From Octopus bimaculoides (taxonomy: Eukaryota), in the NCBI RefSeq assembly GCF_001194135.2, contig NC_068983.1, forward strand, positions 17,803,905 through 17,867,904: a stretch of 64,000 nt of DNA. Direction: 5' to 3'. A program made the translations under genes and the position numbers. The notes below the pieces were generated by a model. It was not told where the DNA came from, did no database searches, and worked only from the letters and a program-made list of their open reading frames with translations. Below are positions 3,113 through 60,063 of this stretch, piece by piece. Each line of letters begins with the position of its first letter. Positions within the stretch are counted from its first letter, which is position 1.

Positions 3113-3430
3113 AATTTGCAGAAAAACAAACGAGGACAAAGAAACGAAGACAGGTGTATGAAAAGAAGCAGGAGTATTAGTTTGAGGATCGGGAAAGTGA
3201 GAAAATATGTTACGTTTCGAGTCCACGCTTTTCCACAGAAAGGAATAAGAGAAAAGAAACTGAGAAAGAATTTTTTAAAAAATGTGGATTTAGCGACCAG
3301 GCATGACGGCTCATATATATGCATATATATATGTAGCAAACTAAGAACAGCCGGTGAACAAGCCAAAAAAAACAACAACAAAAAGACAAAAAAAAAAACA
3401 TATATACAGTCCCTGTGGCTATTTCAGGGA

Positions 3431-5336: not shown

Positions 5337-6099
5337 NNNNNNNNNNNNNNNNNNNNNNNNNNNNNNNNNNNNNNNNNNNNNNNNNNNNNNNNNNNNNNNN
5401 NNNNNNNNNNNNNNNNNNNNNNNNNNNNNNNNNNNNNNNNNNNNNNNNNNNNNNNNNNNNNNNNNNNNNNNNNNNNNNNNNNNNNNNNNNNNNNNNNNNN
5501 NNNNNNNNNNNNNNNNNNNNNNNNNNNNNNNNNNNNNNNNNNNNNNNNNNNNNNNNNNNNNNNNNNNNNNNNNNNNNNNNNNNNNNNNNNNNNNNNNNNN
5601 NNNNNNNNNNNNNNNNNNNNNNNNNNNNNNNNNNNNNNNNNNNNNNNNNNNNNNNNNNNNNNNNNNNNNNNNNNNNNNNNNNNNNNNNNNNNNNNNNNNN
5701 NNNNNNNNNNNNNNNNNNNNNNNNNNNNNNNNNNNNNNNNNNNNNNNNNNNNNNNNNNNNNNNNNNNNNNNNNNNNNNNNNNNNNNNNNNNNNNNNNNNN
5801 NNNNNNNNNNNNNNNNNNNNNNNNNNNNNNNNNNNNNNNNNNNNNNNNNNNNNNNNNNNNNNNNNNNNNNNNNNNNNNNNNNNNNNNNNNNNNNNNNNNN
5901 NNNNNNNNNNNNNNNNNNNNNNNNNNNNNNNNNNNNNNNNNNNNNNNNNNNNNNNNNNNNNNNNNNNNNNNNNNNNNNNNNNNNNNNNNNNNNNNNNNNN
6001 NNNNNNNNNNNNNNNNNNNNNNNNNNNNNNNNNNNNNNNNNNNNNNNNNNNNNNNNNNNNNNNNNNNNNNNNNNNNNNNNNNNNNNNNNNNNNNNNNNN

Positions 6100-6159
<60 letters not shown>

Positions 6160-7871
6160 TGTATATCTACTTATACATCTATATGTGTGTATGTATGCGT
6201 ATGTATAGCTATCTAATTATGCCATATGTATGTACGCGAGGACGTGTGTATGTGTGTTTTTGTATGTGTGTCACTGTTATCGAGTGTTTCTGTGTACTTC
6301 TGTGATTGCGTAATGGCTGTTAGTTTCATTAAAATATGGTTGAATTGAAAGTTATAAATTTCAATCATTTATATGATCGTAAAGATAAAGCTATTCCTCT
6401 ATGTCTCCTGATCGTCCTTGATTCTTCTCTTCTCTTTTCCTGTCTCCTTATACAATTCTGCTCCTCGGCTCTCTTAATACGTAATATTTCTATGGTAACA
6501 ACCATTTCAGACTTTACTTTACTGACGTGTCTGTCGGAATGTACTTGCTTGAATTATGCTGTTGCAATTAAAATCTTTTAACAGAATGATGTACGCTTTC
6601 GGATGCAATATGAGGCACCAAACGCACGTTGTAATCAACTTAACTGCGTATTACTCGAGACGCAAATACCCATCAAAGGGGAAAATTCCTTATTTACTTC
6701 GTGAAAGAAAATATGGAAATAAATAAATATTAATTTCATACAAACATTTCGTAGTTTTCTTAGATATTAGTGAATGTAAGTAACGTTAAAGTTATGGATT
6801 AACTGCTTTGTTGTAACAAACATGCCACTTAAAATACAATTTTGTCTTATATGCAAAAGCGTTTTTTCAATTAACTGTAAAAGGAAAACTGTGTTTTTAA
6901 CCTTATGAAGTGTACTGATAGGAAAAACTTGAAGATTGATGTATATATATATATATATNNNNNNNNNNNNNNNNNNNNNNNNNNNNNNNNNNNNNNNNNN
7001 NNNNNNNNNNNNNNNNNNNNNNNNNNNNNNNNNNNNNNNNNNNNNNNNNNNNNNNNNNNNNNNNNNNNNNNNNNNNNNNNNNNNNNNNNNNNNNNNNNNN
7101 NNNNNNNNNNNNNNNNNNNNNNNNNNNNNNNNNNNNNNNNNNNNNNNNNNNNNNNNNNNNNNNNNNNNNNNNNNNNNNNNNNNNNNNNNNNNNNNNNNNN
7201 NNNNNNNNNNNNNNNNNNNNNNNNNNNNNNNNNNNNNNNNNNNNNNNNNNNNNNNNNNNNNNNNNNNNNNNNNNNNNNNNNNNNNNNNNNNNNNNNNNNN
7301 NNNNNNNNNNNNNNNNNNNNNNNNNNNNNNNNNNNNNNNNNNNNNNNNNNNNTATATATATATATATATATATATTAGAAGAAATTTGAAACACTTAGCA
7401 GTCTACTTGGAAGTAAATATTCTAATAATTATGGATGATAGTGTAAAGTTAAATAGCTGAAACTACATCTCAAAACCGAGTCGCGAATTCCGCTTTTCTG
7501 TTGCCTTTATCAACTTTCAGACCAATATCTGTGACATAGAACAAATTACTATAAAATGTTCAACATATGAAGCTTTATGTGTAAGATAAATTGAATTACC
7601 TTCAGCTAGAAATCAAAGCTAGGTGTTACAGAAGCGTTTCCGATAATGTTTCTCTGTTGCACATGCCCCACAATATCGGTAATACAAATATACAACGGAA
7701 AAGTCACTGATATTAACCTATTCTCTTTACAGAAAAATTGGCAACAATAAAGGTTTTATTTAGTTTGACAAAATATAAAAGTTAATGATATTGTAGGTGC
7801 CAGAAGTCTTCAACAGATAAATTGCTATCACCAACCTACTTTTAGCTTGGTTTTAAGGTAACATAACAAAT

Positions 7872-8978: not shown

Positions 8979-10477
8979 ATTTCATTCTTTTAAATTGCCA
9001 TAAAGGCATTACATAGGGGGTGGGGACACTACAACACATGTGGGACATATAATAATTAAAATAAAAATATGATTGCTATGAATGACATGAAAATGAACAT
9101 GAAAAACATTAAAATCAAAATATTAAAATAATGATACATGCATGATAACTGAGAAATGAGAATATGAAAAGTGTGTTACTCACCCCACACTGAGTAACAC
9201 CACTCGTCAGCTCTGAGTCCTGAGTCCTCTTTAGTTCTTGATCTAGTCTTTCGTTTACCGTTTTCCCCATCGCTGAGTGACAGCACTCTCTCCTCCATGT
9301 ACACGTAACCTTTTCATCAAGGGAGGGGGTCTTGTGAACTTTGTGGTGTCTGTTCTTTCTTCTTTTTTACCTGTGGGGAGAGGGGATGGGTGGGTTTGGT
9401 GTCTGCATGGGGAGAGTGGGGTCTGAGTGGTCTTGGGTGGGATGGAGTTGGTCTGGGGTCCCACATCACACTGACTGTTCTTCCTTTTCTTTCTTTTTCC
9501 TCTGTCACTGTCCATTCATCCTCCTTGTTCCTTCCAACTATCTGTATTTCTTCCTTTTTCTCCTCCATCTCCACCATCGCTTCTACTGTTGTTTTCCTCT
9601 GCAGAAGGCAGTGGGCTCTAATGTGCCCCTTTTGGCCACATTTAAAACATTGTGGGATTCTGCCTTCCACCCACACTCTTAACACGATCTCCCCCAACGT
9701 CACTGTCTCCGCCATACTCTCCAATTGTTCTCCTCTGCTTGTATAATGAGGTCCAGTGTTTTTCCTCTCCATCCTCCGGCCTCCGTTTCCGTGGCTTGGA
9801 GGGCAGCCACTACCTCCTCACTTTCAACGAGGACGGCTACCGCAACCCAATTAACTTCTATATCGGGTGGAATTCCTTCTACCCTCACCTTAGAAGTCTT
9901 CCTTTCAAGGTACGTGGGTAGAAGTACCATTTCCTCCGCTTTTACGGTTGCACTCGGCAGCCTCTTTGCCTCCTCTGCTGTCCTAAACTGGACAACCATC
10001 GTCCCATATCCATTTCCTTTCGCTATGTATGTCACTTCATTCGAAAGTCCCCTCAATGCTTTTTCTACTTTTTCCATCTCAATCCGCTCCACCTTCCTAC
10101 TCTCCACTGAGTACATCTTGTAGATAAGGGTCTTCTTTTCCATATTTTCCATAACCCTTTTCGGGGGTAGTAACTTTACGTCACCGCCCACCTTCTGTGT
10201 CATCTTACACAGCTCCTTCAGTCCGGCTAGGTCCACCTCCCTTTTCTTCACCTTTGCAGCCTCAGCAAAACACTTTACTCTTTCCAAATGCTCGTCCATT
10301 CTATTTACCGTCTTAACGAGCTCCTCTTCCGCCGAGGATAGCCCATACTCGCTCAGGTCTGAATACATTTTTTTCTATCGGTATAACACTCACTTATAAA
10401 CCGCTGCCACGTAGCACAAAAAATCCCGTCCGACTCGTCAAAAATCAACACAGCGAATAGACCGACGCATGCGCGGA
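8979..10477 (-). mobile_element. ORF1-only non-LTR (Tx1/L1-like) retroelement with 14-bp TSD
   Basis: aagcaagcttcttt is duplicated at 8965-8978 and 10478-10491. The element has a short 5' UTR, one gag-like ORF1 and a 3' UTR ending in aatgaaataaa. No EN/RT is visible. Confidence 0.8.
9317..10368 (-). pseudogene. ORF1 protein with CCHC zinc knuckle, one frameshift near 9725
   Basis: ORF 10368-9700 joins frame 9772-9317 through a 1-bp slip. It contains CFKCGQKGHIRAHC (CX2CX4HX4C) and is homologous to the ORF1 at 31600-32611. Confidence 0.75.
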
Positions 10478-13122: not shown

Positions 13123-13159
<37 letters not shown>

Positions 13160-13173
13160 GTTATTGACCCTTA

Positions 13174-13385
13174 AGTGGCGAGCTGGCAGAATCGTTAGCA
13201 CGAGGGGCGAAATGCTTAGCAGTGTTCGCATGTAGCTATCTTCTGAGTTCAAGTTCCCCCGGGTTGACTTTGCCTTTCGTCTTTTCGTGGTCGATAAGTT
13301 GAGTACCAGTAAAACACTGGGGTCGATGTAATCGACTCATCCCCTCCCCCAAAATGGCTGCCTTTGTGGCAAAATTTGAAGCCAT
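13174..13385 (+). mobile_element. SINE family B, first of a tandem pair
   Basis: gagctggcagaatcgttagc head, gagttcaag B-box, gactttgcctttcgtc core. Confidence 0.85.
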
Positions 13386-13403
13386 AATTATTATTGACCC
13401 CTA

Positions 13404-13615
13404 AGGCGGTGAGCTGGCAGAATCGTTAGCACGCCAGGCGGAATGCTTAGCGGTATTTCGTCTGCCGCTACATTCTGAGTTCAAATCCCACCGAGGTCGA
13501 CTTTGCCTTTCATCCTTTCAGGTCGATAAACTAAGTACCAATTAAGTATTGGAGTCGATGTAATCGACTAGTCACCTACACCTAATTAACGGCTTTGTGC
13601 CTCCAGTAGAAAGGG
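13404..13615 (+). mobile_element. SINE family B, second of a tandem pair
   Basis: aggcggtgagctggcagaatcgttagc...gaggtcgactttgcctttcatcc...gatgtaatcgact. Confidence 0.85.
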
Positions 13616-14159
13616 TTATTGTAATTGACCCTCACGAAAAAAATAGCCTCGGTCGTGACCCAGGGATGTCTTTAAAATTTTCACCTTTTTCATCTGCCTT
13701 CGGTTGAAAAATTTTGTCACTTATATAGAGAAATGAATCTGCTTTTGTTTGGTCGAAATCCTCCTTGAAACAAAATTTGTCGAATGTTGTTTGGAAAAAC
13801 GTCGTTTGTTTTAGCAAATAAACCAAAGAACTCTTATGAAATAATAATAACCACCTATCAGATATAACACACAAGGAATGAAAGTGTATATGTGTGTGAC
13901 TATANNNNNNNNNNNNNNNNNNNNNNNNNNNNNNNNNNNNNNNNNNNNNNNNNNNNNNNNNNNNNNNNNNNNNNNNNNNNNNNNNNNNNNNNNNNNNNNN
14001 NNNNNNNNNNNNNNNNNNNNNNNNNNNNNNNNNNNNNNNNNNNNNNNNNNNNNNNNNNNNNNNNNNNNNNNNNNNNNNNNNNNNNNNNNNNNNNNNNNNN
14101 NNNNNNNNNNNNNNNNNNNNNNNNNNNNNNNNNNNNNNNNNNNNNNNNNNNNNNNNNNN

Positions 14160-14325
14160 GTATACATACAAGCATATATGGGTACAGGACATCACAAAAA
14201 ACGTTAAACACAATGAGAAACGAAAACATAAAGACGAAGACAGAAAACGAACGTTTTTCGAACAACGAAAAAAAACAAACAGAGAAACGAGACATGCAAC
14301 ATAAAGAATATTTCCCTTCTAAAGT
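14160..14325. repeat. Dispersed repeat family C (copy 1)
   Basis: caagcatatatgg..acaggacatcacaaaaaacgttaaacacaatgagaaacg...cagagaaacgagacatgcaacataaagaatatt is near-identical to 26618-26790. Confidence 0.85.
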
Positions 14326-15066
14326 TCCTGTTCCAGAGAGAGAGAGAGGGAGAGAGAGAGGAGAGAGAGAGCAAAGAGACAAATTTTTACCAAGGTTTTG
14401 CAAGTAACAGTAGTATTGCTTCTGTGACAACTGCAGACAACGCCAGAGAGGCGGGAAAACCTCACTGTCGCTTGCTTCGAATCAACTCACTGATACCGAA
14501 AGAAATACCAGCAGCAAGAACAACAACATCAGCGACAATAACAGGAATTATAACATGTGCAAGAACACCAGCGGAAAAGGTGACAAGACTAACGGACGTT
14601 TATTCAAATTCAATGAAGATTTCCCAAATTTTATACATTTTAAAGAAAGTAAGAATATCATTAGTACAATTAATAGTAACATCAGAGGCGTATATTGGGA
14701 ACATGACTAGAATTGTTCTGCCACAGACTCTAACACCACTACTTTAGCTTCGTCACAGCAAGGAACAGCAAGTGCACTAACCACTATCACAGCCGCCACA
14801 ACAACGATCACTACTAAATATAGCAAATCTGTTTCAAGAAATTCAGTTCTACTTGTAAACGGCGAATAATTTAGACGAGCCCATCATTTTGTAAAACGAG
14901 CGCCAATGAGCGTAAAAGTGTTAAATTATTTTGGCAAATGCATTGGAAGGGCATCAAGAGGAAAACTGATCGTTTCGTAAACTTGGAGCACTGATAGGCC
15001 GAAAATGACTAGAAAGCATATGGTATCAAAGCTTTCGCCTTCTTTGGGAAGAAATTTCGGAAGAAT

Positions 15067-26248: not shown

Positions 26249-26617
26249 NNNNNNNNNNNNNNNNNNNNNNNNNNNNNNNNNNNNNNNNNNNNNNNNNNNN
26301 NNNNNNNNNNNNNNNNNNNNNNNNNNNNNNNNNNNNNNNNNNNNNNNNNNNNNNNNNNNNNNNNNNNNNNNNNNNNNNNNNNNNNNNNNNNNNNNNNNNN
26401 NNNNNNNNNNNNNNNNNNNNNNNNNNNNNNNNNNNNNNNNNNNNNNNNNNNNNNNNNNNNNNNNNNNNNNNNNNNNNNNNNNNNNNNNNNNNNNNNNNNN
26501 NNNNNNNNNNNNNNNNNNNNNNNNNNNNNNNNNNNNNNNTATACATATATAACATAAATAATGTATAATTATATGCATATATCCATATATATATGTATAT
26601 ACCGACATCTATATGTA

Positions 26618-26790
26618 TACATGCAAGCATATATGGTTACAGGACATCACAAAAAACGTTAAACACAATGAGAAACGAAAGCATAAAGACGGAAACAGTA
26701 AACGAACTTTTTTTCGGACAACGAAAAAAACAGAGAAACGAGACATGCAACATAAAGAATATTACCCTTCTTCAGTTGTCCTTGCTCCAT
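26618..26790. repeat. Dispersed repeat family C (copy 2)
   Basis: Near-identical to 14160-14325. Confidence 0.85.
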
Positions 26791-26991
26791 CTACTCCGCG
26801 TATATATGCATACACAGAAAACACTCATATGCTCATATATATGTAATCTATTTAGTAGATATAGGAATAGGGAGCAAGCTGTTTCTCAGAAGATTGAAAA
26901 AAACGTAATAAACAACCTTAATCGAGTTTTCGAAACTTATAGAACTCTCATCAGATTTGTTTACATCAGCTTGATTAATCCCCTCTCTCTC

Positions 26992-30999: not shown

Positions 31000-32611
31000 C
31001 AACACATGAAAAATGAAATGAAAATGAATATAGTTACAATGAAAATGAAACGGCCATCTTGGCCCCGCTCCGAGATGAAACCGTGATTTCCCCTTTTTTT
31101 ACAGTTTAAGGGAAAAGTTTTTACATATGTTCTTCTAACCGAGATGGTTACGAGTTTTACTATTTTTTAAAAAACAAAATGTTTAACCAAAAGGTTTTTA
31201 TGAGTCTTTTGACAGTCTTTAAAACAAATCATAACTTACCACTTTTTTGTTATCTCAACATAATCCACCACCGAGGCACGAGGTTCAATCTCGACCTCCG
31301 GCCCCAGTGGATTCACTTCCGTGGGAAAGGCCTCCTTCAATGCGCTATAATTTACATCATCCATTAGGATACAACTCATGCTCTTGTCGTAACCTACTTC
31401 TTAAGTTCACTTTTACTATACCTTTCAGTTTTGAAATTCTTCTCACTAACTTTTGGGCTGTCCTATATGTCACTAGAAAAACCTTACTTCTGTGTATGTC
31501 TTGTATGTCTGTGCATTGTGACTGACTCTGTGCTTTTCTGTGTCTGTAATTCTGCGTTATCCTGTCATTGTCTGTCTATGATTCTCTGTCACTGTATGTC
31601 TATGTATTTGTGTGTTTGTGAGTCTGTATGTTTGTGTGCCTGTAAATCTGCGTGTTTCGTCTGTGTGTCTGTGTTTTTAGGCTTTTGTGATTCTGAATTA
31701 TCGTGTGACTGTTTGTATTTCTTTGTGTCTGCAAGCCTTTGTGTTTATGTGTCTGTGGGTCTGAATGTTTATGTGCTCGCAAGTCTTTGTTTTTGCTTGG
31801 TAATGAATTCTTATCTGTAGCATTTTTCACTGGAGGTCCTACTGGCGAACGTTTCCTGCTTTTCGTTGTAGGTTGGTTTACATCTTCCTTGGCTTTGTAG
31901 TTTTCTGTTCCATTATCGTTAGTGACCTCCTCCTCTCTCTTTTTCTTGATTTTACTTCCACAAAAATTACTATCTTGTTCTGTTATTTGATTCCGCTGTC
32001 TCTCCGCCATTATATTCTCCTGAATACTCCCCTCTACGATTTCTATTACTGCTCTAGGGCATCTCTTTCTTAAGTGCCCTCTTTTACCACATTCGTGACA
32101 CTTTTGGGGCCTCCTCTCCAACATTATCGCCAGCTTTTCTTCATTTGGTAGCTCTAAAGTTTCAGGTATTCCTTCATAATACTTCTGGCTCACTGCACAA
32201 ATTATCTCTATTCCATAGCTAATTTACTTGTTGGGTCCGGTTTATCATGCCCATCCTACAATCTTCGCCGTTTCCCTCCCTATCTTCGAAAAAAATCGCC
32301 GATATTATATATTCTGGTTCCATCCACGGTGAGATTCTTCCCACACTAATTCTAACAATCCGTTTGTCCAAACAGTTTAGCAGCAATGTCCATTTCTCCC
32401 CTTGTATCATCCTCGTGGAGGATTTTTCCGCCTCCTCCTCTGATACAAAGATTACCACTATAGACGCATATCTCTTCTCTCTCGTAATGAACGCTATGCT
32501 GTCTCCTATATGTCTTTCCGAATTGTTTTCTATTTCTTCCTGCGGTGCATTTTCAATTCTGTTTTTATTTGAAAATGTTCTGAATATTACCGTCTTCTTT
32601 CCCATTTTCAC
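31000..32611 (-). mobile_element. Second Tx1-like ORF1 (zinc knuckle) with 3' UTR, frameshifted
   Basis: CHECGKRGHLRKRC knuckle. VRISVGRISPWMEPEYI aligns with VRVEGIPPDIEVNWV of the 9.3-10.4 kb ORF1. The ttcatttt-rich 3' region is similar to that element. Confidence 0.75.
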
Positions 32612-32617
32612 TTTTGG

Positions 32618-33432
32618 TTAACCACCGAAACTAGCGAACGAGGAGAACATCCGTTTTGCCAGCGGAGGCCACATCCGTCCCCCATCGAGAAGAATCCAGA
32701 GATGCCTCAACCTTAGCGCAGATTTGCGCATCAACAGCCAAGGCATAGCTAGTCTTTCCTTTAACGGTCTTTTACAGTAAATAGAGCGTCTTACAAGTGG
32801 CTTCAAGCCTTCAACAAAAAAGCGAAAGAATTATCTTTCCAACTTGATCAACCACGAATCCGGGCAAGGAACGACGGTTAGGCGGTAGGTAATGACCGAT
32901 ACGATGAATACCTTGGCCACCTCTGCCCTCCCTTTCAGGGATATCCACCTCCAAGACCAGATCTTGACTATGTGTGCCACCCTGCTCGAAACCTCCGCCC
33001 GGTTCTTCTCTACCTGGAGGTCTGGACCAAACCAGACCCCCTAGCAACTTAACCAGTCCCTCCATTCCAACGTCCTACAACGCTGTCTGAAGGTATCGAC
33101 TCGCCCCTCCAGGTGCCGAGTTGCAAGCCGACTGATTTTTCCCAGTTAATCTTTGCTCCTGCCACCGTCTCGTAAACCTCAATTGCCTTGCCTACCTCCT
33201 GTACGTGTTCCATTCTGGTCACGCTGATGGCGATGTCATCCGCATAAGCTGAAACCGACTCTCCACATCCTGGCTCTCTCGGGATGCTACTCAACTTTCG
33301 CAGTAACGGTTCAAGAGCCATCACATACAAAAGCGGTGAGAATGGACACCCTTGGCAAACCGAGCATTTGATACAGAACGGTCTTGATAGAAAACCGTTC
33401 ACCCGAAAGATCGAGTTAACGTTTTCGTACAA
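32618..33432 (-). pseudogene. Tx1/L1-clade reverse transcriptase C-terminal fragment
   Basis: QGCPFSPLLYVMALEPLLRKL, SAYADDI, GAKINWEKSVGL and LRLRHLW, with frameshifts. Confidence 0.88.
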
Positions 33433-33479: not shown

Positions 33480-33655
33480 GAATACAGTTCTATATTTAAG
33501 AGATGAGGAATTATGTACATTATTTATATTTGACGGATATTTGTTCACATCTTGTTTGTTGTTAACACAACGTTTCGGCTGATATACTCTCCAGCCTTCA
33601 TCAGGTGTCTTGGGGAAATTTTGAACCTGGTTCTCATTCCTAAGGTATTTTTTGA

Positions 33656-34789: not shown

Positions 34790-36925
34790 TAATTTACTGC
34801 CAGAAATTACCCATCAATAAATTGACTATTAAATTCTTTTGAAGTTGACCTATTTGATCTTGTTAGAAACATTAAATTTTCAAAATATAAAACTCTAAAA
34901 TTCTTTCTACAAGGATCTTCGTACATACACACACACACACATACATACATACGTACATACATATCTGTGTGTATATATGAGTTGAGTAAGTGATATACTT
35001 ATTTATATAATATTGTAGATATATAATATTATATGGAGTGCGTGAATCTGTTGCTTGTCAATGTGTGTAAATATTTATTTTTAAAAGTTCTGTTGCGGGA
35101 GAATGATATAGTGAAGAATCTTCTATTTTGATAAACAAAATGAAACCCCTGGCAACGACAATAAATTTAGCTGTAAATCAAATAAGTGCCCATCAGTAAA
35201 TTGACTTTTCAATTCTTTTGAAGATGACCTATGTGCTCTTGTTAGAAACACTAAACTTAGAAACGCTATAATTCTATTTAGTAGGATGTTAATAAAAAAA
35301 AAAAATATGAGAAATACAATATTCTAGGAATATCAACCTGCATTTGGATAAAGCTGGAAACCTGCTCTAAGTGAATAACGGATCTCACTATTGTTTTGTC
35401 TATCATTTCTAACACAATTAACTATACAAAGAACATATGAGGTATTTGAATGGCATTAACAACGGAAGCCTCCGGAATACCTCAAATCTAAATAAACATA
35501 ATGAATCAGAACTACTCACTCTTGATCAGCCCTATTATATTCTTGAAGACCACAAAATTAATTTCAATGACGATCCATCAATAAGACTAATTAATCCTAC
35601 AGAATTGAGCTTAATTATAATTAGAAAACAATTTCTAGATAAGATTTTACCTAAGGTTAAGCAGGTTTCTCCATTAAGCTTTTCGAAAAAGACTCAAGGT
35701 CTCTAATTGATTGCTTTAAATCCTAACTTCGACATTAATGATTACTACGCTTCCATCACTAAAACTCGGTGAATTGAAGTACTTAACATTTCTAACATAA
35801 TTGTTACTATTACTGTTAATGAAATAGAAGTCTATAATGCAAACAAGAAAACCTGGCATCTATTACAACGGATCATTATGGATTAAAATTTCTTCTAGAA
35901 TCCTCTTCATTGACGGTATGAAAGGAAACTATTCAACTGAAATTAGCAATCTTAACTCTTTGTTCCTACTCTTTAATCTCAAAGATAAAGTCCACGGTGT
36001 ACAGGGTACTCTCCATAGTTACGGCCGTCTATTGCAGTTCACTACTTGTAACTTCTGGGCTATAGACAGGATTACAAAATATTTACATCACTTTTTAAGA
36101 ATGTACTACTACATATTGCATAGATATTAATCGCACAGTATGTAATTTATTTGATACAACTCTTAATACTGCTAATAATTTATACTATCCTATTCGCGAA
36201 CATAATAAATCACTGAATTATATGTATAGACATCTTAACTACCTAAGGGCTATTATAAATTGTTTAGTAAGGAATGTCTCACTTAAACATTATTATATTC
36301 CAGCTAATGGATAGATACTTAAATATTCTGCTACATATTACAATAAGACCTCATAGAAGCGCATGTAATAAAAGATATTTATCATACTAAATCAAACACC
36401 AGAGCAGTTAGTCGTTGGAATAGAAAAATGAATAATCGCTGGTTCAACTTTCCGCGTAATTTGCATGTTACCACCCCTCAGTTTAGACAACTTCAACCGC
36501 AACCGTGTTTTGTAATGCATTTAATATATGCACGATCAAAATCTTGCATTCTACAGCATCTAACTTTCCTCAAATTATGCCTTGTGTCTAAAATATATAA
36601 CTGCATTGTAATAGAAAAAGCCCGTTAAATCCTAATTGCTTAGGAAAGAACATTGTATACCAATGTAATGCCCATATTGCAAATTCAGCGAATACATACG
36701 TTGGTGGTTCTATTGCTAAGGAAATTAAGGCATGAAATAGAAGTCTATAATGCAAGCATTAAAACCTGGCATGTATTACAACGGATCATTATGGACTAAA
36801 ATTTCTTCTAGAATCCTCTTCATTGACGGTATGAAAGGAATCTATTCAACTGAAATTAGCAATCTTAACTGTTTCTTCCTACTCTTTAATCTCAAAGATA
36901 AAATCCACAGTGTACAGGGTAGTAT
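34790..36925 (+). mobile_element. Decayed Penelope-like element RT region with internal duplications
   Basis: FEDDL..LVRN, LEDHKINFNDDPSIRLINP, FDINDYYASI, MQTRK..YYNGSLWIK and WFNFP remnants. Approximately 34790-34900 recurs at 35185-35290, and 35819-36007 recurs at 36733-36920. Confidence 0.75.
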
Positions 36926-47873: not shown

Positions 47874-47914
<41 letters not shown>

Positions 47915-48094
47915 TNNNNNNNNNNCAAAAAAAAAGAGAATCACAAATGTCACTAAATGCGACTAGGGTGTTAGGAAACACCTACATTACTAGAACTAAG
48001 AGCTAAACCGTTCTAATACTGTAGTTAATGCACATGGATGAAAACACATACACTAACAGAGACCATAATCGTCCGAAAAGTGCCGGTCAAGAAT

Positions 48095-48147
48095 TCTTAA
48101 TATTGACGCGTCAGTTTCGGCCATTACCGTTGCCTCATCAGTTAAGA
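48095..48147 (-). ncRNA. Type I hammerhead ribozyme (monomer 1)
   Basis: TCTTAA-CTGATGA-GGC(AACGGTAATG)GCC-GAAA-C-TGA(CGCG)TCA-ATA-TTAAGA. Stem I is a perfect 6 bp, the core is intact, the triplet is AUA, and stem III has one mismatch. Confidence 0.8.
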
Positions 48148-48359
48148 CAGCCTGACTTCTGTTCTTTCCGGACTCGCTTCGCCATTAGCATTTATGCATT
48201 CGTCATCCAAATAATTGTATGATTTAGCGATTCGCTTATGTGTAAATATAAAATTAATACAAACAGTAGTTTGCAATGTTACGCCAAAAACGAGATACAA
48301 ATGTCACTAATTGCGACTAGGTTGTTAAGGAAATGCCTACATTGCTAGAACTAAGAGCC

Positions 48360-49900
48360 CTGGTTATTGTTCCCAGGTCTCTTCTGGCCCGGAGTGGTAG
48401 CATCTATAATGGTTCCAGCTATGAACCAGCTATGAGTGTTTGGTAAACTGTATGGGAGAATTCTGATTGTAAGAGTGAGGAACCAGACAGAATATACTAG
48501 GGTAGGTACAGTGCTGTTTTAGGAGTGGAGGGGATGTGCAGATTAGATATTTGTAGTAAGGCAGACGTGGGAGAAGTTTTTAGAAAAAGGGAGAGATGCA
48601 TATTGGGCCTGTATGAACCCAGAGAAGGCATAATACCGTATGGATAGGGATGCAATCTAATAAGTGTTGCGGTTGTATGGAGTAGATGGTAGATTGTTGA
48701 GAGCTGTACAGACTTTCTATAGAGAAACGAGGGCGACAGTTACGGTGGGTGGTGAAGAAAGTGAGTGGTTTGATGTGAAGGTTGGGTTACGACAAGGTTG
48801 TGTGATGTCTCCGTGGTTGTTTAATCTATTTATGAATGGTGTTGTGAGAGAGGTGAATGCTGGAACCTTTGGTAGGGGAAACCAAATGGTGGGAGAAAAT
48901 GAAGAGAAATGGCAGGTGAGTTAATTGTTTGTTGACGATACAGCACTGGTGGCGAATTCGGGAGAGCAATTGAGAAGATTGGTGGTAGAGTTTGGAAGAG
49001 TGCGTGAGAGGAGGAAATTGGGAGTGAATGTAGCTAAGAGTAAGGTGGTGAGATGTTCGAGAGATGGAATGGCTGGTAGGATGTATGTGCGTATAAATGG
49101 TGAGATTTTTAGAGGAGGTGAGTGTTTTTAAGCACCTGGGAGCACATGTAACGGCGGATGGGGGTGACGGCTGAGGAAGTGGGATATAGAGTTAGGGTTA
49201 GGGAGGGGAGTAAGATACTTGAAGTTGTGAAAAGTTGAGTATGAAATCGAAATGAGGTGTGTATGAGGGCATGATTGTGCTAACAATGTTATATGGTGCA
49301 GAGACGTGGGGTTTGAGAGAGGCGGAAAAGAGGTGACTAGGTGTTGCTGAGATGAAATGTTTGAGTGCTATGATTGGTGTGACACGGATAAACAGGATGA
49401 GGAATGAAGAGGTGCGACGGCGAGCAGCAATAAGAGAAAATCTATGTACCAGAATGGATTGACGAATGTTGAGGTGGTTCGGCCTAATGGAGTAGATGGA
49501 TTGGATGAGGAACGGATGGTAAGGAGGGTGATGAAGGCGGAAGTGATATGCAGCAGAAACAGTGGCAGACCTCGGTTTGTGTGGATGAATGGAGTGTGGA
49601 AAGCTTTGGTGGTTAGAGGTGTTGGAGTTAGAGAGGCAGGAAAGTTTATTAATGATAGGAAATCTTGGAGAGTGTTTGTGGACAGACGAGTGAATTGATG
49701 TTGCTCAAAGGGGGTACGGAACCAGCATGATGCGGTGGGGGTGATCCAGCATATGCAGTCTGGCCCCGCTGCTGATATCTAGAGATGCTTTCTATGCCGT
49801 GACCCAAGCATCAGACGGAGCTTGCAACTATGAGCTGGGAAAGCAATTGAATGCCTTGTCTGTGTCTTTTGGCTACCCCCTACTATGGAGAATAGGTTTT
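48360..49900 (+). mobile_element. 5'-truncated RTE-clade LINE (RT, C-terminus, 3' UTR)
   Basis: VKVGLRQGCVMSPWLFNLFM, LFVDDTALV, LGVNVAKSKV, GRPRFVWMNG; few stops and frameshifts. Confidence 0.9.
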
Positions 49901-50067
49901 GGTAAATAAAAATAACACAAATGTCACTAAATGTGTATAGGATGATAGGAAACACCTACATTGTTAGAAATAAGAGCTAAACCACTCTAAAGCTGTAGTT
50001 AACACGCATGAATGAAAACATATACCCTAACAGGGCCATAATCGTCCGCAAAGCACCGATCGGGAAT

Positions 50068-50120
50068 TCTTAATAATGACGCGTCAATTTCGGCAATTTC
50101 TATTACCTCATCAGTTAAAA
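50068..50120 (-). ncRNA. Type I hammerhead ribozyme (monomer 3)
   Basis: TTTTAA-CTGATGA-GGTAAT(AGAA)ATTGCC-GAAA-T-TGA(CGCG)TCA-TTA-TTAAGA. Stem II is 6 bp, the core is intact, the triplet is UUA. Confidence 0.8.
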
Positions 50121-50155
50121 CAGCTCGACTTCGGCTCTTTATGGTTTCGTCACAA

Positions 50156-50312
<157 letters not shown>

Positions 50313-50497
50313 AAGGTGAAACTTATAGAAAAACAAAAGACGAAGACAGGTGTATGAACAACAAGAATGTATATTAGTTCCATATTCGGGGAATGTGTAT
50401 GTATAAAATGGATACATATATGTGTTTGTATGTGTGTGTGTATGTATGTGTGTGTGGGTGCGTGTGTGCGTGTGTGCGCGTATATATATATATGTAC

Positions 50498-50536
<39 letters not shown>

Positions 50537-50618
50537 GATATACAGGGCAGGGAATCGTCAATTAGTAATAAAATTAATAATTAACAATTTTGCCGGGTAG
50601 CCCAGGAGNNNNNNNNNN

Positions 50619-50672
<54 letters not shown>

Positions 50673-51017
50673 CTTGTATGTATATATGATATATATATAT
50701 ATATGTATATATATATATTTATATATAAGTAGCTTAGTGTACACATTTTAAAGACTAACAGATTCTTGCCCTGAGGACATGAGAAATCACGAGAAGAAAA
50801 CGGAAAAAAGTTCATTCAAAAACTGTAGGTGTGAATAAAAACACAAAAGAAAAAGAAAGGAAGGAAGAAGAGTTACATCCCTTTTGGCCATAAAAGCTAT
50901 AATTGAACTAGTTGTGGAATAATACGTCGGAGCGAGTTCCAAAGTTTGCGAGACAGCTGCTCAATCTAGAGAGAGTATTGACCTCTAGTTCGTCAAAAGA
51001 AATTTGCTCGTGTACGC

Positions 51018-51840: not shown

Positions 51841-54689
51841 ATTTCAGGTAACTTGTAAATGAAGAAAGAAAAGAGAAAAAAACATGTCGAACACTACAGG
51901 AAAGTTCTAAGATAAATCTGTCTACAAACTGACTTCGTATTTTTATCTGCTGTACTAAAAATATACAAAGTAAAATGAAATAGAATGAAATGAATGGGTT
52001 ATAATGTCTCTTGGATACATTAGATTATTTAGAAAGTAGTCTGACAATGTGGAACTAAAAGAATCAAACCAGATTATACTGGAGCTAAGTAAGTAATTAC
52101 AGTATAGACAGATGTAAATATAAATCAAATTTGGTTAAGGGAATTAGTGACACTAAGGTTTTTTTTCTTTTTTCAGAGGATACGTATCAGTAGAACATAA
52201 AGAGGTTGTAGTGGTTGGTTCAAAAAATTCCCATTAAGATATAGACTTAAATTTAGAATTACAGCGAGAAAAACGCAGGAATGAATATAGCATATTGATG
52301 TTAGAAAATTAATAGAGTAATGGATACTTTTTTTACAAGGAAACTTTGGCGAGATGTCCAACGGTGATTTGTTAATAAGATCGAACAGAATATGCTGCGT
52401 AATGATATATATTTCTTTGTTTTATGGAGAGGGTTTTGTATGTGGATGTTAGGTGTAGATACTTTCCGTGTGTTCAATCTCAACACTATTCTTTACACTA
52501 CTCTCTTTCTCATTCTCTGCATGTCTTTACACACAATACTTATATTTACATGCACGCACGCACATATATATGCTTCCCTCTATCTGTATGTATGTATGTA
52601 TGTAAGTTTGTATCCATCTAGTCGGCTATTTATGTATCTGTATATATAAATATATGTACATATTAACATTAGCATATGTAATTATAATTTGACATACATG
52701 CATATATATTTATATACATATATATATTAAACTATAATTATATACGTACATTATATAGCCTTTTAGTTAAATTTATATGCCTAGAATAAACAAAAAACCA
52801 CAACAGTGCAATGTAAAACAACTATATACAACCTAATTTCATGCTGTTGTCTGATACATCTTCACGATATATAAGAAAGATGACTTTTGGATGTAAAATC
52901 GTTAAGAAATTGGTGTCAGAATGCTTATCTAAAAGAAGGAAATACCAGATTATCTTATGGCTAAAGAATTAATTAGAATGTAAATGTAAACAACGTTTGG
53001 TTAAGCGAATTAGGGACGTTGTTAGGAGATACATATCATTAGCAGGGCTGGAAAGGCGGTAGTAATTACTATAAAAATGGTACTTAGATGTAGTCTTAAA
53101 CTCAGTAGTGCAGAGAATAAAATATATATCACACTGTTGAAGAAAATTACAAAATTAATGAACGTATTTGCGAGGGAGACTTAGGAGAGACGTCCAATGG
53201 CGATTCATTAGCAATGTCACTCAGAAAAAGCCGGAAGGTGACATTTTTCTTTCGTTTATTGAAGACAATATAGAAGTATAGATAATTACGTATCTCTTTC
53301 TCTCTCTCGTTCTGTCTCTCTCTCCCTCAATCTCTCTTCAGACACCTACATGTATATATATGTGTGTGTGTGTGTGTTTGTGTAGTATGTATTCACACAG
53401 GCTCACACACAAACACACGCACATACACACAATCGTTTCTTCATTTTTCATACATACGCATTATAAACGGATTGTCAACATTTCTAACACGAACTCATAG
53501 ACGTCTACAAAGCCCTGTTTTGCTTTGAAACTTTCGAGAAAAGTATGGCACAAAATGGTATCAAGTAGCATACCAACAAACCGCTCTTTTGCATTCATCC
53601 AAAGTGGAATTTCAGCTCATCAGTATATGAACATATACTCCTCCATTTTTATGGTAATGTTGAATCACTATAGATATGTATCTATAGATATGTATCAATC
53701 ATACCTAACAACTCTAGCTTTTGAATGTGTTATGTAACTTGAAAGAGTGCAAGTGAGATTATCTCTGGAAACTTTACCTTGCAGAACTGCAGCAGTCGGC
53801 GGTCTTTAGGGGTTACGGTTCAAAATTTGATAGGTAATTGAATTTACGCAGCTTGATATTATACAAGTTGCCGTATGAAAAAGTAGCCCGGGTTTCGTAG
53901 CTCAATGTAAAAATAGTAATAAATTTACATGTGCTGTACACATATGAAATGATATGGTTTCAACTTTAGACTTTTCAACACCTGTTGGAATGACCTCCTT
54001 ATGTGAGATTGCTACGTCAGTTTACATGCTGACAAATTTGGTCTTCGAGTAATCCTTTCGCGAATGTCCTGAATAACTTCCGACGTTCGAACTGTATCGT
54101 CTCCTTGTTTTGGGCCGTTGTACGCGGATCCTGTAGTGCGTAACTTTATCAGTACTTATATCGTTCTCTTTACCGGTAAATCTAAAACTTGACTTCAAAC
54201 ATTTCACGCGTTTGCTTAACAAAATCCTCTCCCGCATATGCTCTCACAATCTCTGCTCTTTCAGTTATTGAGTGAGTCATCTTGACGAAACGGCTAGAAA
54301 TTTTCACTCAATGTAAAATAACAATCAAATAATGTGGTGAAGATGCGGTGAGGATAACATAGCAAACAGTCGACTAGTGCATTTTTGATCAGCAGTTAGA
54401 AGCCATTGAAATAATGCAACGACACTTGAAAATGAAAGGTCTAGTGCCTTTCCGTGTGTGTAAATTTATTTCTGTATCTACACTATGCTACGGAATCCGG
54501 TCTGCTTTATTGTGCGCCACGCTGTAGACTTTAATCCCTTAATATTGAAATCGCTGCTTGAAAAAGGCGATTGAGTTCGCAAAAACATGTTGATATCGAC
54601 CACATAGACCAGGGTTTTATCATTCATCAGAGAAAAACGGTTCTATTTTGTAAGGGCTGAGCATGCGTTAAAAATGTCGATACAGATGA

Positions 54690-55830
54690 ACTGTCAAATG
54701 TATCGGTGATCGTACAACTTCGAAGATATCTCTTTATATTAAATACACTGACACCCAAGTTCCTATGCGGTGATGTTGGTTTATGTCGAGAGAATGGATT
54801 GGGAATATCTCATGGCTGTGATGGTCACACTAGTGATAAATTTAAGGAAAAAATCATTGATACCTTTAGTCTATTAGGCCTCAAAAACTTTGTTACTACT
54901 AATCTCTGAAAAAAAAAAGACTTTTTCGATGTTTCCCTAGATCTAAACTCCCGCTCTTATAAACCTTACCATAAGTCAAGCCAGAAACTCTCCTACATAC
55001 ACTAGCAGTTCTGCATTCCTCTAGTGTTTAAAAACCTGACAGCTAACAGTAATAGAATATCTAATTTCTCTTCTATAGAAATATTTCATAAGGCAGTCCC
55101 CTACTTTAAGAAAGCCCTAGCTAACAGAGGCTTCAAAGATATGATATATTAAGATCCTTGAAGTAAAAATATGAATCATAAAAATTTAACAAAAATAGAC
55201 TTAGGAAAATAATATAACTCACCTCCACTTTCTCCTTAAATGTTTAATCTAACATGGGCGAGACATTCCTGTCTCTTTTACATAAATAATTCCCAGTAAA
55301 CTATAAACACAAGAAAAAGTTTAAAACAGCGCGATTAAAATATCATACAGCTGATGCTCCTATATGAAGAACATTGTCAATCATAATTATCTCCCAGTTG
55401 TAAATGTCAAGACCTTGAAACATGCACACTTGATCAGGTGTGTATGATAAACTCCGTCGTATATGACAAGGAAGTCAAAGTAACGATTAAAGAAAAATTA
55501 CATCGGGTTATGCCAAGGCGATTTCAAAAGATGTTATTCAAGCTACATGTCTGCTGTCCGATACGTTGACAAAAGCAAAGATACTAAGTTGGCTAAACGC
55601 AAACGGTCTTCAAACCCCAATATAAATTGAAAAATGTGAGGTTGAAGAGTTGATGTAACAAAGATGTCATGTTGATCTGAAGAGTTAGCTTTCTATATCT
55701 GCATTGTTTTGAAAATGTACAATGCTATTACAAAATGTTAGCATGCATACTAGAGCAGACATTGTGCACTAAAATAACGTTTATTTTTGCCTGATGAAGG
55801 TTGCAAAACGGCTGTAATCCTATGCATTTC
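54690..55830 (+). mobile_element. Decayed Penelope-like element (RT thumb + GIY-YIG region) with 3' CTGATGA
   Basis: DGHTSDKFKEKIIDTFSLLGL, FFDVSLDL...YKPY, IFHKAVPYFKKAL, CQD..TCTLDQVC; CTGATGAAGG at 55791. Confidence 0.75.
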
Positions 55831-59123: not shown

Positions 59124-60063
59124 NNNNNNNNNNNNNNNNNNNNNNNNNNNNNNNNNNNNNNNNNNNNNNNNNNNNNNNNNNNNNNNNNNNNNNNNNNNNN
59201 NNNNNNNNNNNNNNNNNNNNNNNNNNNNNNNNNNNNNNNNNNNNNNNNNNNNNNNNNNNNNNNNNNNNNNNNNNNNNNNNNNNNNNNNNNNNNNNNNNNN
59301 NNNNNNNNNNNNNNNNNNNNNNNNNNNNNNNNNNNNNNNNNNNNNNNNNNNNNNNNNNNNNNNNNNNNNNNNNNNNNNNNNNNNNNNNNNNNNNNNNNNN
59401 NNNNNNNNNNNNNNNNNNNNNNNNNNNNNNNNNNNNNNNNNNNNNNNNNNNNNNNNNNNNNNNNNNNNNNNNNNNNNNNNNNNNNNNNNNNNNNNNNNNN
59501 NNNNNNNNNNNNNNNNNNNNNNNNNNNNNNNNNNNNNNNNNNNNNNNNNNNNNNNNNNNNNNNNNNNNNNNNNNNNNNNNNNNNNNNNNNNNNNNNNNNN
59601 NNNNNNNNNNNNNNNNNNNNNNNNNNNNNNNNNNNNNNNNNNNNNNNNNNNNNNNNNNNNNNNNNNNNNNNNNNNNNNNNNNNNNNNNNNNNNNNNNNNN
59701 NNNNNNNNNNNNNNNNNNNNNNNNNNNNNNNNNNNNNNNNNNNNNNNNNNNNNNNNNNNNNNNNNNNNNNNNNNNNNNNNNNNNNNNNNNNNNNNNNNNN
59801 NNNNNNNNNNNNNNNNNNNNNNNNNNNNNNNNNNNNNNNNNNNNNNNNNNNNNNNNNNNNNNNNAGATGTTGGTGAGAGGGATAACTACCCTTGGCAAAC
59901 AGGACACAGTCGTGTGTCGATAAGCCAGCTGGAGGAGATGTCCTCCTGGGGCTAAAAGCAACAGTAACATCCACCCCTAGGGGTCAGCCACACTTAAGTG
60001 GCAATATACTACACTTTATCGTGCAGTTACTGTTAATACTTCATTTAGAGAATTAACATTGCT

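Follow-up and report, generated by a model that had tools for sequence, protein, structure and literature searches.

What kind of element is the short, interrupted repeat with a ribozyme-like motif on one strand that lies in the genome of Octopus bimaculoides, and could it still release an RNA? The window analysed here, to which all positions below refer, is the whole 64,000-nucleotide stretch of NCBI RefSeq assembly GCF_001194135.2, contig NC_068983.1, from 17,803,905 to 17,867,904 of the forward strand, and the repeat occupies its positions 47943 to 50155. We read this region as a decayed genomic copy of an animal retrozyme of the kind without long terminal repeats (non-LTR retrozyme), that is, a non-coding tandem repeat of ~354 bp with a type I hammerhead ribozyme on the minus strand, and we put the probability of that reading at about 0.7. 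Animal non-LTR retrozymes were defined in 2020 as non-coding, low-GC (<45%) tandem units of 150-450 bp with type I hammerheads (Cervera & de la Pena, PMC7229834). They are expressed as highly self-paired circular RNAs that tRNA ligases close, and Penelope-like elements (PLEs) are believed to mobilise them (PMC7229834). Characterised retrozymes come from coral, the mussel Mytilus galloprovincialis (350-390-bp units, ~5,000 ribozyme copies) and a salamander, the axolotl (PMC7229834). Our literature search found no paper describing a cephalopod retrozyme.

When the proposed unit is compared with the 64-kb window by blastn, three pieces are returned and no further copies; their borders were set with blastn and MAFFT. 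Unit 1 (47943..48296), whose functional strand, like that of the other two, is the minus strand, is the sole complete monomer, at 354 bp. Unit 2 (48297..48358) directly adjoins it head to tail and is 90% identical to it, and comprises only the initial 62 bp in plus-strand numbering, without the ribozyme. Unit 3 (49917..50155) is a partial copy of ~239 bp with 83% identity to unit 1, truncated at a (CA)77 microsatellite. The three monomer starts named in a preliminary description of this DNA (47943, 48297 and 49917, the first two 354 bp apart) are therefore genuine starts of pieces, but the ribozyme it had assigned to each monomer is kept in only two of the three, copy 2 ending after 62 bp. Head-to-tail units in the ~150-450 bp range with one type I hammerhead each are thus present, on minimal evidence. 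Tandem Repeats Finder did not call the repeat in the window because only 1.2 units are contiguous. In composition the units resemble retrozymes: they are non-coding, their GC content (38.4% and 38.9%) lies below ~45%, and they have no long terminal repeat, primer-binding site or polypurine tract. The longest open reading frame (ORF) in the unit encodes ~64-65 aa in a plus frame; this product (~65 aa) has no relatives among 1.84 billion representative proteins, and minus-frame peptides of the unit have no matches among 5.8 billion proteins. We also observed that the CpG observed/expected ratio is 1.31 at 47943-48296 and 1.23 at 49917-50155, against 0.81 for the whole window.

The left border of the array is obscured by an assembly gap of N at 47916-47925, 17 bases left of the start of unit 1. 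By direct sequence comparison, the A-rich stretch between the two (47926..47942, assigned to the minus strand), 17 bases that read CAAAAAAAAAGAGAATC on the plus strand, resembles the unit end CCAAAAACGAGAT, so the gap probably hides a further unit of which this stretch would be the tail. On the right, a continuation of unit 3 past the (CA)77 was sought at 50392-50428, where the alignment scores 30 (shuffles, 16.5 +/- 2.4); since 6724-6757 offers an AT-rich match that is just as good, we do not rely on it.

Units 1 and 3 each carry a minus-strand hammerhead, documented by a descriptor, a covariance model and a table of individual pairs. Together with its closing helix, the hammerhead of unit 1 spans 48086..48156, with the core motif at 48095-48147; that of unit 3 spans 50059..50129, with the core motif at 50068-50120. 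Read from 48147 to 48095, the unit 1 motif is UCUUAA CUGAUGA GGCAACGGUAAUGGCC GAAA CUGACGCGUCAA UA followed, past the predicted cut between 48101 and 48100, by UUAAGA; its helix II is GGC..GCC and its helix III segment C-UGACGCGUCA-A. Read from 50120 to 50068, the unit 3 motif is UUUUAA CUGAUGA GGUAAUAGAAAUUGCC GAAA UUGACGCGUCAU UA followed by UUAAGA, with the predicted cut between 50074 and 50073, helix II reading GGUAAU-AGAA-AUUGCC and helix III U-UGACGCGUCA-U. The catalytic core is complete in both (C3 U4 G5 A6 N7 G8 A9; G12 A13 A14; A15.1-U16.1; and H17, which is not G), and its nucleotides are identical between the two copies, as had been noticed at the outset. Both copies have type I topology: helix I is the open arm of a three-way junction, the other two helices (II and III) being capped. 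Helix I has 6 bp and, past a 3x3 internal loop, extends into a closing helix, for which unit 1 has GUCAGG/CUUGAC and unit 3 GUCG.G/C.CGAU. The sole compensatory change between the copies, A-U to G-C, falls in this helix. In unit 3 all 6 bp of helix II form, capped by an AGAA loop; in unit 1 only 3 contiguous pairs are left. Over the whole structure, standard pairs fill 89% of pair cells, a share that drops to 26-52% once the 3' partners are shifted by 1-3 columns.

How easily could such a motif arise by chance? Our descriptor, a regular expression combined with pairing rules, required the core, a helix II of at least 3 bp, A15.1-U16.1, H17 and at least 5 of the 6 pairs of helix I. It recovered the minus-strand sites 48095-48147 and 50068-50120, exactly where the preliminary description had placed them, together with 26908-26960 (minus); in first-order Markov random sequence it finds 0.03 sites per 60 kb. 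The covariance model was trained on four experimentally validated retrozyme hammerheads only, namely coral Amil224, mussel Mg353 and axolotl Ax353 and Ax330 (Supplementary Table 2, PMC7229834), and was run over both strands of the window with filters off. The unit 1 site ranks first in the window, at 18.8 bits (E 0.0035), and the unit 3 site third, at 14.6 bits (E 0.065); both align end to end with this model of validated type I ribozymes.

Two other sites turned up in these scans. The plus-strand segment 22885-22931 matches the covariance model at 15.4 bits (E 0.036), with a core of CUGAAGA, a C.C mismatch at 10.1-11.1 and a single further mismatch, in helix I, and is either a degenerate relic or a chance match. 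The third descriptor site, 26908-26960 (minus), was considered as a third ribozyme and rejected: its segment lengths (16 and 12 nt) match those of the real sites, but its flanks are unlike the unit and the covariance model is silent there. Its helix II is weak, helix III is absent and it adjoins (TA)19, and we treat it as chance or an unrelated relic.

The folding of the RNA separates the two strands of unit 1. Its minus-strand RNA has a minimum free energy (MFE) of -99.4 kcal/mol, against -79.9 +/- 4.5 for dinucleotide shuffles (z -4.35; 0 of 100 shuffles as stable), and its MFE fold includes helix I and the closing helix. The linear plus-strand RNA gives z -0.37. When folded as a circle from the predicted cut, the minus strand pairs 60% of its bases, 18 of the pairs being G-U, and reaches z -3.81 (0 of 200 shuffles); the circular plus strand gives z -0.14. 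Unit 1 therefore has the highly self-paired ribozyme-strand RNA that is typical of retrozymes, and the asymmetry between its strands points to selection on the minus-strand RNA, as would be predicted for a retrozyme.

Helix III, one of the distinctive points of the repeat, deserves separate attention. In both copies it is the 10-nt palindrome UGACGCGUCA within a 12-nt segment between A15.1 and U16.1, and we observed that its CGCG centre is unchanged in both, though overall divergence is 17%. As a hairpin it is predicted at 0 kcal/mol in both copies and at -0.5 in the two-copy consensus; as a self-duplex it is predicted at -18.5 and -18.1 kcal/mol in the two copies, within a range of -18 to -20 that includes the consensus. 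By thermodynamic prediction alone, then, it combines the weak hairpin and the self-complementarity of a double hammerhead, and the suggestion that the palindrome could support dimeric folding agrees with these values. Metazoan type I hammerheads have been described as cleaving via double hammerheads in multimeric transcripts (PMC4209133, PMC7229834), and most invertebrate retrozyme ribozymes are reported to act alone. A consensus ribozyme with pair 15.2-16.2 repaired could form a 5-bp hairpin and might also act alone.

The array is interrupted by a reverse-transcriptase relic of long interspersed nuclear element (LINE) type (48359..49916, plus strand, 1,558 bp); RVT_1 is matched by fragments of it (E 4e-7 and 0.0035), and a single frame contains 43 stops. 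From its motifs FVDDTALVA..KSKVV and its long C-terminal tail we take it to be of LINE type and not of PLE type. The relic is antisense to the ribozyme; its truncated 5' end meets position 62 of unit 2, and the 3' end, which is A-rich, adjoins the first base of unit 3. On the simplest reading, a LINE would have inserted into the A-rich end of a unit and the array would have lost ~290 bp or more. Both outer ends of the array lie at microsatellites. On the left is (TA)18 at 47876..47911, with the N gap between it and the array; on the right, (CA)77 at 50158..50312 adjoins unit 3, with (TG)n and (TA)n arrays beyond it at 50421-50727. Dinucleotide arrays padded by 35 bp per side make up ~6% of the window, and we estimate the chance of both array ends falling there at ~0.3%. 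PLEs are reported to prefer microsatellites for integration, and the position of the array agrees with that bias, which is only suggestive.

Possible traces of PLEs lie at a distance from the repeat. A PLE-type minimal hammerhead, separate from the units, lies on the minus strand at 33564..33609, where it adjoins a (TAT)n array. It was found with a relaxed descriptor that called for 4 bp or more in helix I, 5 bp or more in helix II and no more than 6 nt instead of helix III, and that permitted a bulged base as an option. The window holds one match, where random sequence would give 0.005 per 60 kb. The motif reads GACAC CUGAUGA A GGCUGG-AGAGUAUA-UCAGCC GAAA CG UU GUGUU: helix I has 5 bp, an A is bulged, helix II has 6 bp, CG replaces helix III and the cut triplet is UU. 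In published PLE ribozymes helix III is absent or reduced to 1 bp, helix I measures 4-5 bp and the long helix II has a bulged 5' base (PMC4209133), and the architecture at 33564-33609 agrees with that description. With this motif and the 354-bp units, both retrozyme and PLE hammerhead architectures are present in one window. PLE protein relics, which the preliminary description had located at 34.8-36.9 and 54.7-55.8 kb, gained no profile or database support: searches of Pfam, PDB and protein databases gave nothing, and a pseudo-protein joined across the frameshifts had no match. What can be read there, by eye only and unverified, are the PLE-like peptide motifs EDHKINFNDDPSIRLINP at 35422-35703 (plus), and FFDVSLDLNSRSYKPYHK, RKII.LTSTFSLNV, a Cys-rich linker and VVY/NYIG..FKR at 54661-55627 (plus); both stretches are frameshifted and resemble a Penelope-like reverse transcriptase and a GIY-YIG endonuclease. 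Beside the PLE-like peptide lie two pairs of direct repeats, 35819-36008 with 36732-36921 (190 nt, 95% identity, spacing 913) and 34805-34897 with 35184-35276 (93 nt, 82% identity, spacing 379). These repeats may represent a pseudo-LTR or partial-tandem structure, and no hammerhead was detected in the direct repeats of 34805-36921.

Several observations weigh against a retrozyme origin. The tandem layout depends on one complete junction, from unit 1 to unit 2, within 1.2 contiguous units; identity between units is only 83-90%, and the array is split by the LINE-type relic. The 53-nt ribozyme segment is 85% identical between copies and the remainder of the unit 83%, so it has no extra conservation. 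With two ribozyme copies, an unchanged 13-base core is ~9% likely by chance at 17% divergence, by our own arithmetic; this number of copies places core conservation, covariation and selection beyond statistical assessment, and since the two copies are homologous they count as one origin. The differences in stem II, which had been offered as covariation, are one-sided (C-G/U-G, A.G/A-U, C.A/U-A), unit 1 keeping 3 contiguous pairs, and so that argument falls. Pair 15.2-16.2, which adjoins the cleavage site, is broken in both copies, as C.A in unit 1 and as U.U in unit 3, where it is the hammerhead's single flaw. A U-A pair occurs there only in the two-copy consensus; the perfect stem III described earlier holds for that consensus but not for the real copies. 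Unit 1 favours a competing fold at -19.9 kcal/mol over the hammerhead fold at -5.3, and in unit 3, a truncated and more diverged copy, the minus-strand RNA has no excess stability (z +0.64). The curated Rfam hammerhead models, a check that had been proposed beforehand, found nothing at gathering score in the whole window, and no hammerhead family matched in the 2.3-kb region at E<=10. On 101-nt slices, Hammerhead_3 reached 18.8 and 11.2 bits (gathering score 48.5) and RAGATH-1-hammerhead 12.3 bits, a failure for which the likely causes are the large size of loop 2 and the 12-nt length of the helix III segment. Finally, DNA scans with the ribozyme signature found no further copies in metagenome (two patterns), viral and prokaryote collections, among which the source organism is not represented.

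Many of these points bear on the state of the locus. Unit divergence of 10-17%, the many stops in the nested LINE, the defect of both ribozymes at 15.2-16.2 and the replacement of most of unit 2 lead us to judge the copy old and inactive, most likely a dead fossil. As assembled, the predicted cut sites are 1,973 nt apart, so release of a 354-nt RNA from the assembled locus is impossible, and a self-cleaved or circular 354-nt RNA from this locus is, to judge by its sequence, unlikely.

Could the units instead be parts of an autonomous PLE, either solo or stacked terminal repeats or a partial tandem of the element, and not an independent retrozyme family? The suggestion has a sound basis, since PLEs carry hammerheads in their pseudo-LTRs (pLTRs) and insert as partial tandems, often at microsatellites (PMC4209133), and a close relationship between animal retrozymes and PLE pLTRs is reported in a 2026 preprint; the minimal hammerhead at 33.56 kb and the unverified peptide motifs at 35.4 and 54.7-55.6 kb would fit it as well. 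The ribozyme of the units is of another build, however, with a 6-bp helix I and its internal loop, a real 12-nt helix III and no bulge, unlike the PLE minimal type. On their own strand the units have no adjoining PLE ORF; the one coding relic that separates them is the antisense LINE, and blastn finds no similarity between the unit and the sequence around the PLE-like relics. The junction of units 1 and 2 is moreover full-length and clean, head to tail, and on balance we consider a PLE origin unlikely.

A plainer account would be an ordinary satellite or a segmental tandem duplication that contains, by chance, a non-catalytic hammerhead-like string. The failure of the Rfam models, the mismatch at 15.2-16.2 in both copies and the near equality of ribozyme segment (85%) and flanks (83%) speak for it, as does the homology of the copies, which makes them one event. 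Set against this are the descriptor's chance expectation of 0.03 per 60 kb and a set of details that match the validated family: the 6-bp helix I, the internal loop with its closing helix and the palindromic helix III. RNA stability is confined to the ribozyme strand and the unit length is typical of retrozymes, and we regard this account as quite improbable. It would be more surprising still if the repeat were a plus-strand element resembling a short interspersed nuclear element (SINE), with an A-rich tail, mobilised by a LINE whose relic is its partner, and with an incidental hammerhead on the minus strand. The units do end A-rich on the plus strand and the LINE 3' end does adjoin unit 3, but a tRNA scan and Rfam reveal no head like tRNA, 5S or 7SL RNA, units 1 and 2 adjoin without a target-site duplication or intervening flanking DNA, and plus-strand RNA has no structure signal (z -0.37, -0.14). 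The unit tail and the LINE 3' end share no similarity, and the A-rich tail is more simply explained as a preferred LINE endonuclease target, which also accounts for the landing site of the LINE.

The retrozyme reading, by comparison, agrees with what is seen in characterised animal retrozymes. As in the mussel, the repeat has non-coding head-to-tail units of equal size and low GC, a 6-bp helix I, a short CG-rich palindromic helix III, a ribozyme-strand RNA that is highly self-paired, and co-occurring PLE-type minimal hammerheads. The mussel helix III runs ...GAAACGCGCGUC up to the cut before U, and here it runs ...GAAAYUGACGCGUCAWUA up to the cut before U; beyond the catalytic core there is no sequence similarity. 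The validated retrozymes have helix III palindromes as well (coral ACAGUACUGU, mussel ACGCGCGU, axolotl ACACGUGU and ACAUGU), within a helix III segment of 4-8 nt as opposed to the 12 nt found here from A15.1 to U16.1. The cleavage triplet is AUA here and GUC in validated ribozymes, one axolotl ribozyme using GUA. Unlike the mussel retrozyme, the octopus copy consists of only 1.2 contiguous units and a separate fragment, diverged and interrupted. The satellite 2 double hammerheads of newt and axolotl (Forster 1988), as far as they are presented in the two papers that cite them (PMC4209133 and PMC7229834), share a palindromic helix III with an unstable hairpin and the possibility of a dimer; the palindrome in the examples given there has 4-6 nt, compared with 10-12 nt here. 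The minimal hammerheads of PLE pLTRs (PMC4209133) are alike in type I topology, in their presumed dimeric action and in tandem or partial-tandem insertions at microsatellites, but their description fits 33564-33609 and not the ribozymes of the 354-bp units, to which no PLE ORF is attached. Type I hammerheads are already listed for a cephalopod in automated Rfam annotations (Hammerhead_1, clan CL00010), the giant squid genome having 235 'hammerhead 1' loci (PMC6962438); at no more than 18.8 bits against a gathering score of 48.5, the copies described here would be missed by such a survey.

As far as sequence can tell, the testable features of animal non-LTR retrozymes are found in this repeat and the feature set of the PLE minimal hammerhead is not. 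The assignment to the retrozyme class made in the preliminary description has survived every test that we ran, covering size, GC, head-to-tail arrangement, a hammerhead on one strand and folding. The repeat is a new example of an already described kind of mobile element, and what distinguishes it is the 12-nt palindromic helix III, the AUA triplet and its invisibility to Rfam. Transcription, cleavage, circularisation and mobilisation by PLEs can be proposed by analogy with the literature on the family. The family would produce a multimeric minus-strand RNA. A perfect palindrome in helix III means that neighbouring hammerheads can pair through it, and the hairpin-weak helix III would so join the hammerheads of neighbouring units into a double hammerhead. 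A tRNA-type ligase of the host would circularise the monomers, with a predicted junction at which ...GACGCGUCAAUA (ending ...GUCAAUA) is joined to UUAAGAAUUC..., and the reverse transcriptase of a PLE would copy the circle into multimeric cDNA that is integrated at microsatellites.

The remainder of the window provides some context for this locus. It is AT-rich (36% GC), comes from a draft assembly, is broken by 14 runs of N and has a dinucleotide microsatellite roughly every 2 kb. Most assembly gaps (e.g. 940-1245, 5337-6099 and 59124-59864) have (TA)n arrays at their borders, and for this reason repeat arrays, among them the one described here with its gap at 47916-47925, have probably been collapsed or cut short during assembly. 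Non-LTR retrotransposon ORFs occur on the minus strand at 9317-10368, 31600-32611 and 33049-33432; the ORF1-like proteins of these elements have a CCHC zinc knuckle (E 0.004-0.006), and one reverse-transcriptase fragment matches RVT_1 (E 9e-14). An intact ORF1 of 222 aa at 9703-10368 has a single database relative, a metaclust protein with 79% identity. At 13154-13631, a 232-bp unit repeated 2.1 times contains the tRNA-like T-arm string GTTCAAATCCCACCGGGTCGAC and is possibly a tandem tRNA-derived SINE; neither ARAGORN nor Rfam called a tRNA there. Scans for bacterial promoters and terminators were negative or of no relevance to the repeat. Short dispersed repeats lie beside microsatellites or gaps, one set at 26615-26777 and 14160-14326 and another at 50333-50379, 3136-3182 and 14223-14243, with 90% and 83% identity, and look like a microsatellite-associated element family.

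The locus is itself a fossil, and its worth lies in serving as a seed sequence for a genome-wide search. We offer tentatively, as a possibility we hold to be doubtful, that it is the dead copy of a still active mollusc or cephalopod retrozyme family that is invisible to Rfam, in which a palindromic helix III of 10-12 nt would impose an obligate double hammerhead and intact arrays elsewhere would give abundant circular RNAs of ~354 nt. If such a family is alive elsewhere in the genome, ribozyme-bearing circular-RNA retroelements would be known from one more animal lineage. Its hammerhead, with an AUA cut site and a long palindromic helix III, would be an additional variant that escapes the curated Rfam models, and automated hammerhead counts in such genomes would then be too low. 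The presence of two hammerhead architectures within 64 kb also bears on the proposal that retrozymes derive from the terminal repeats of PLEs.

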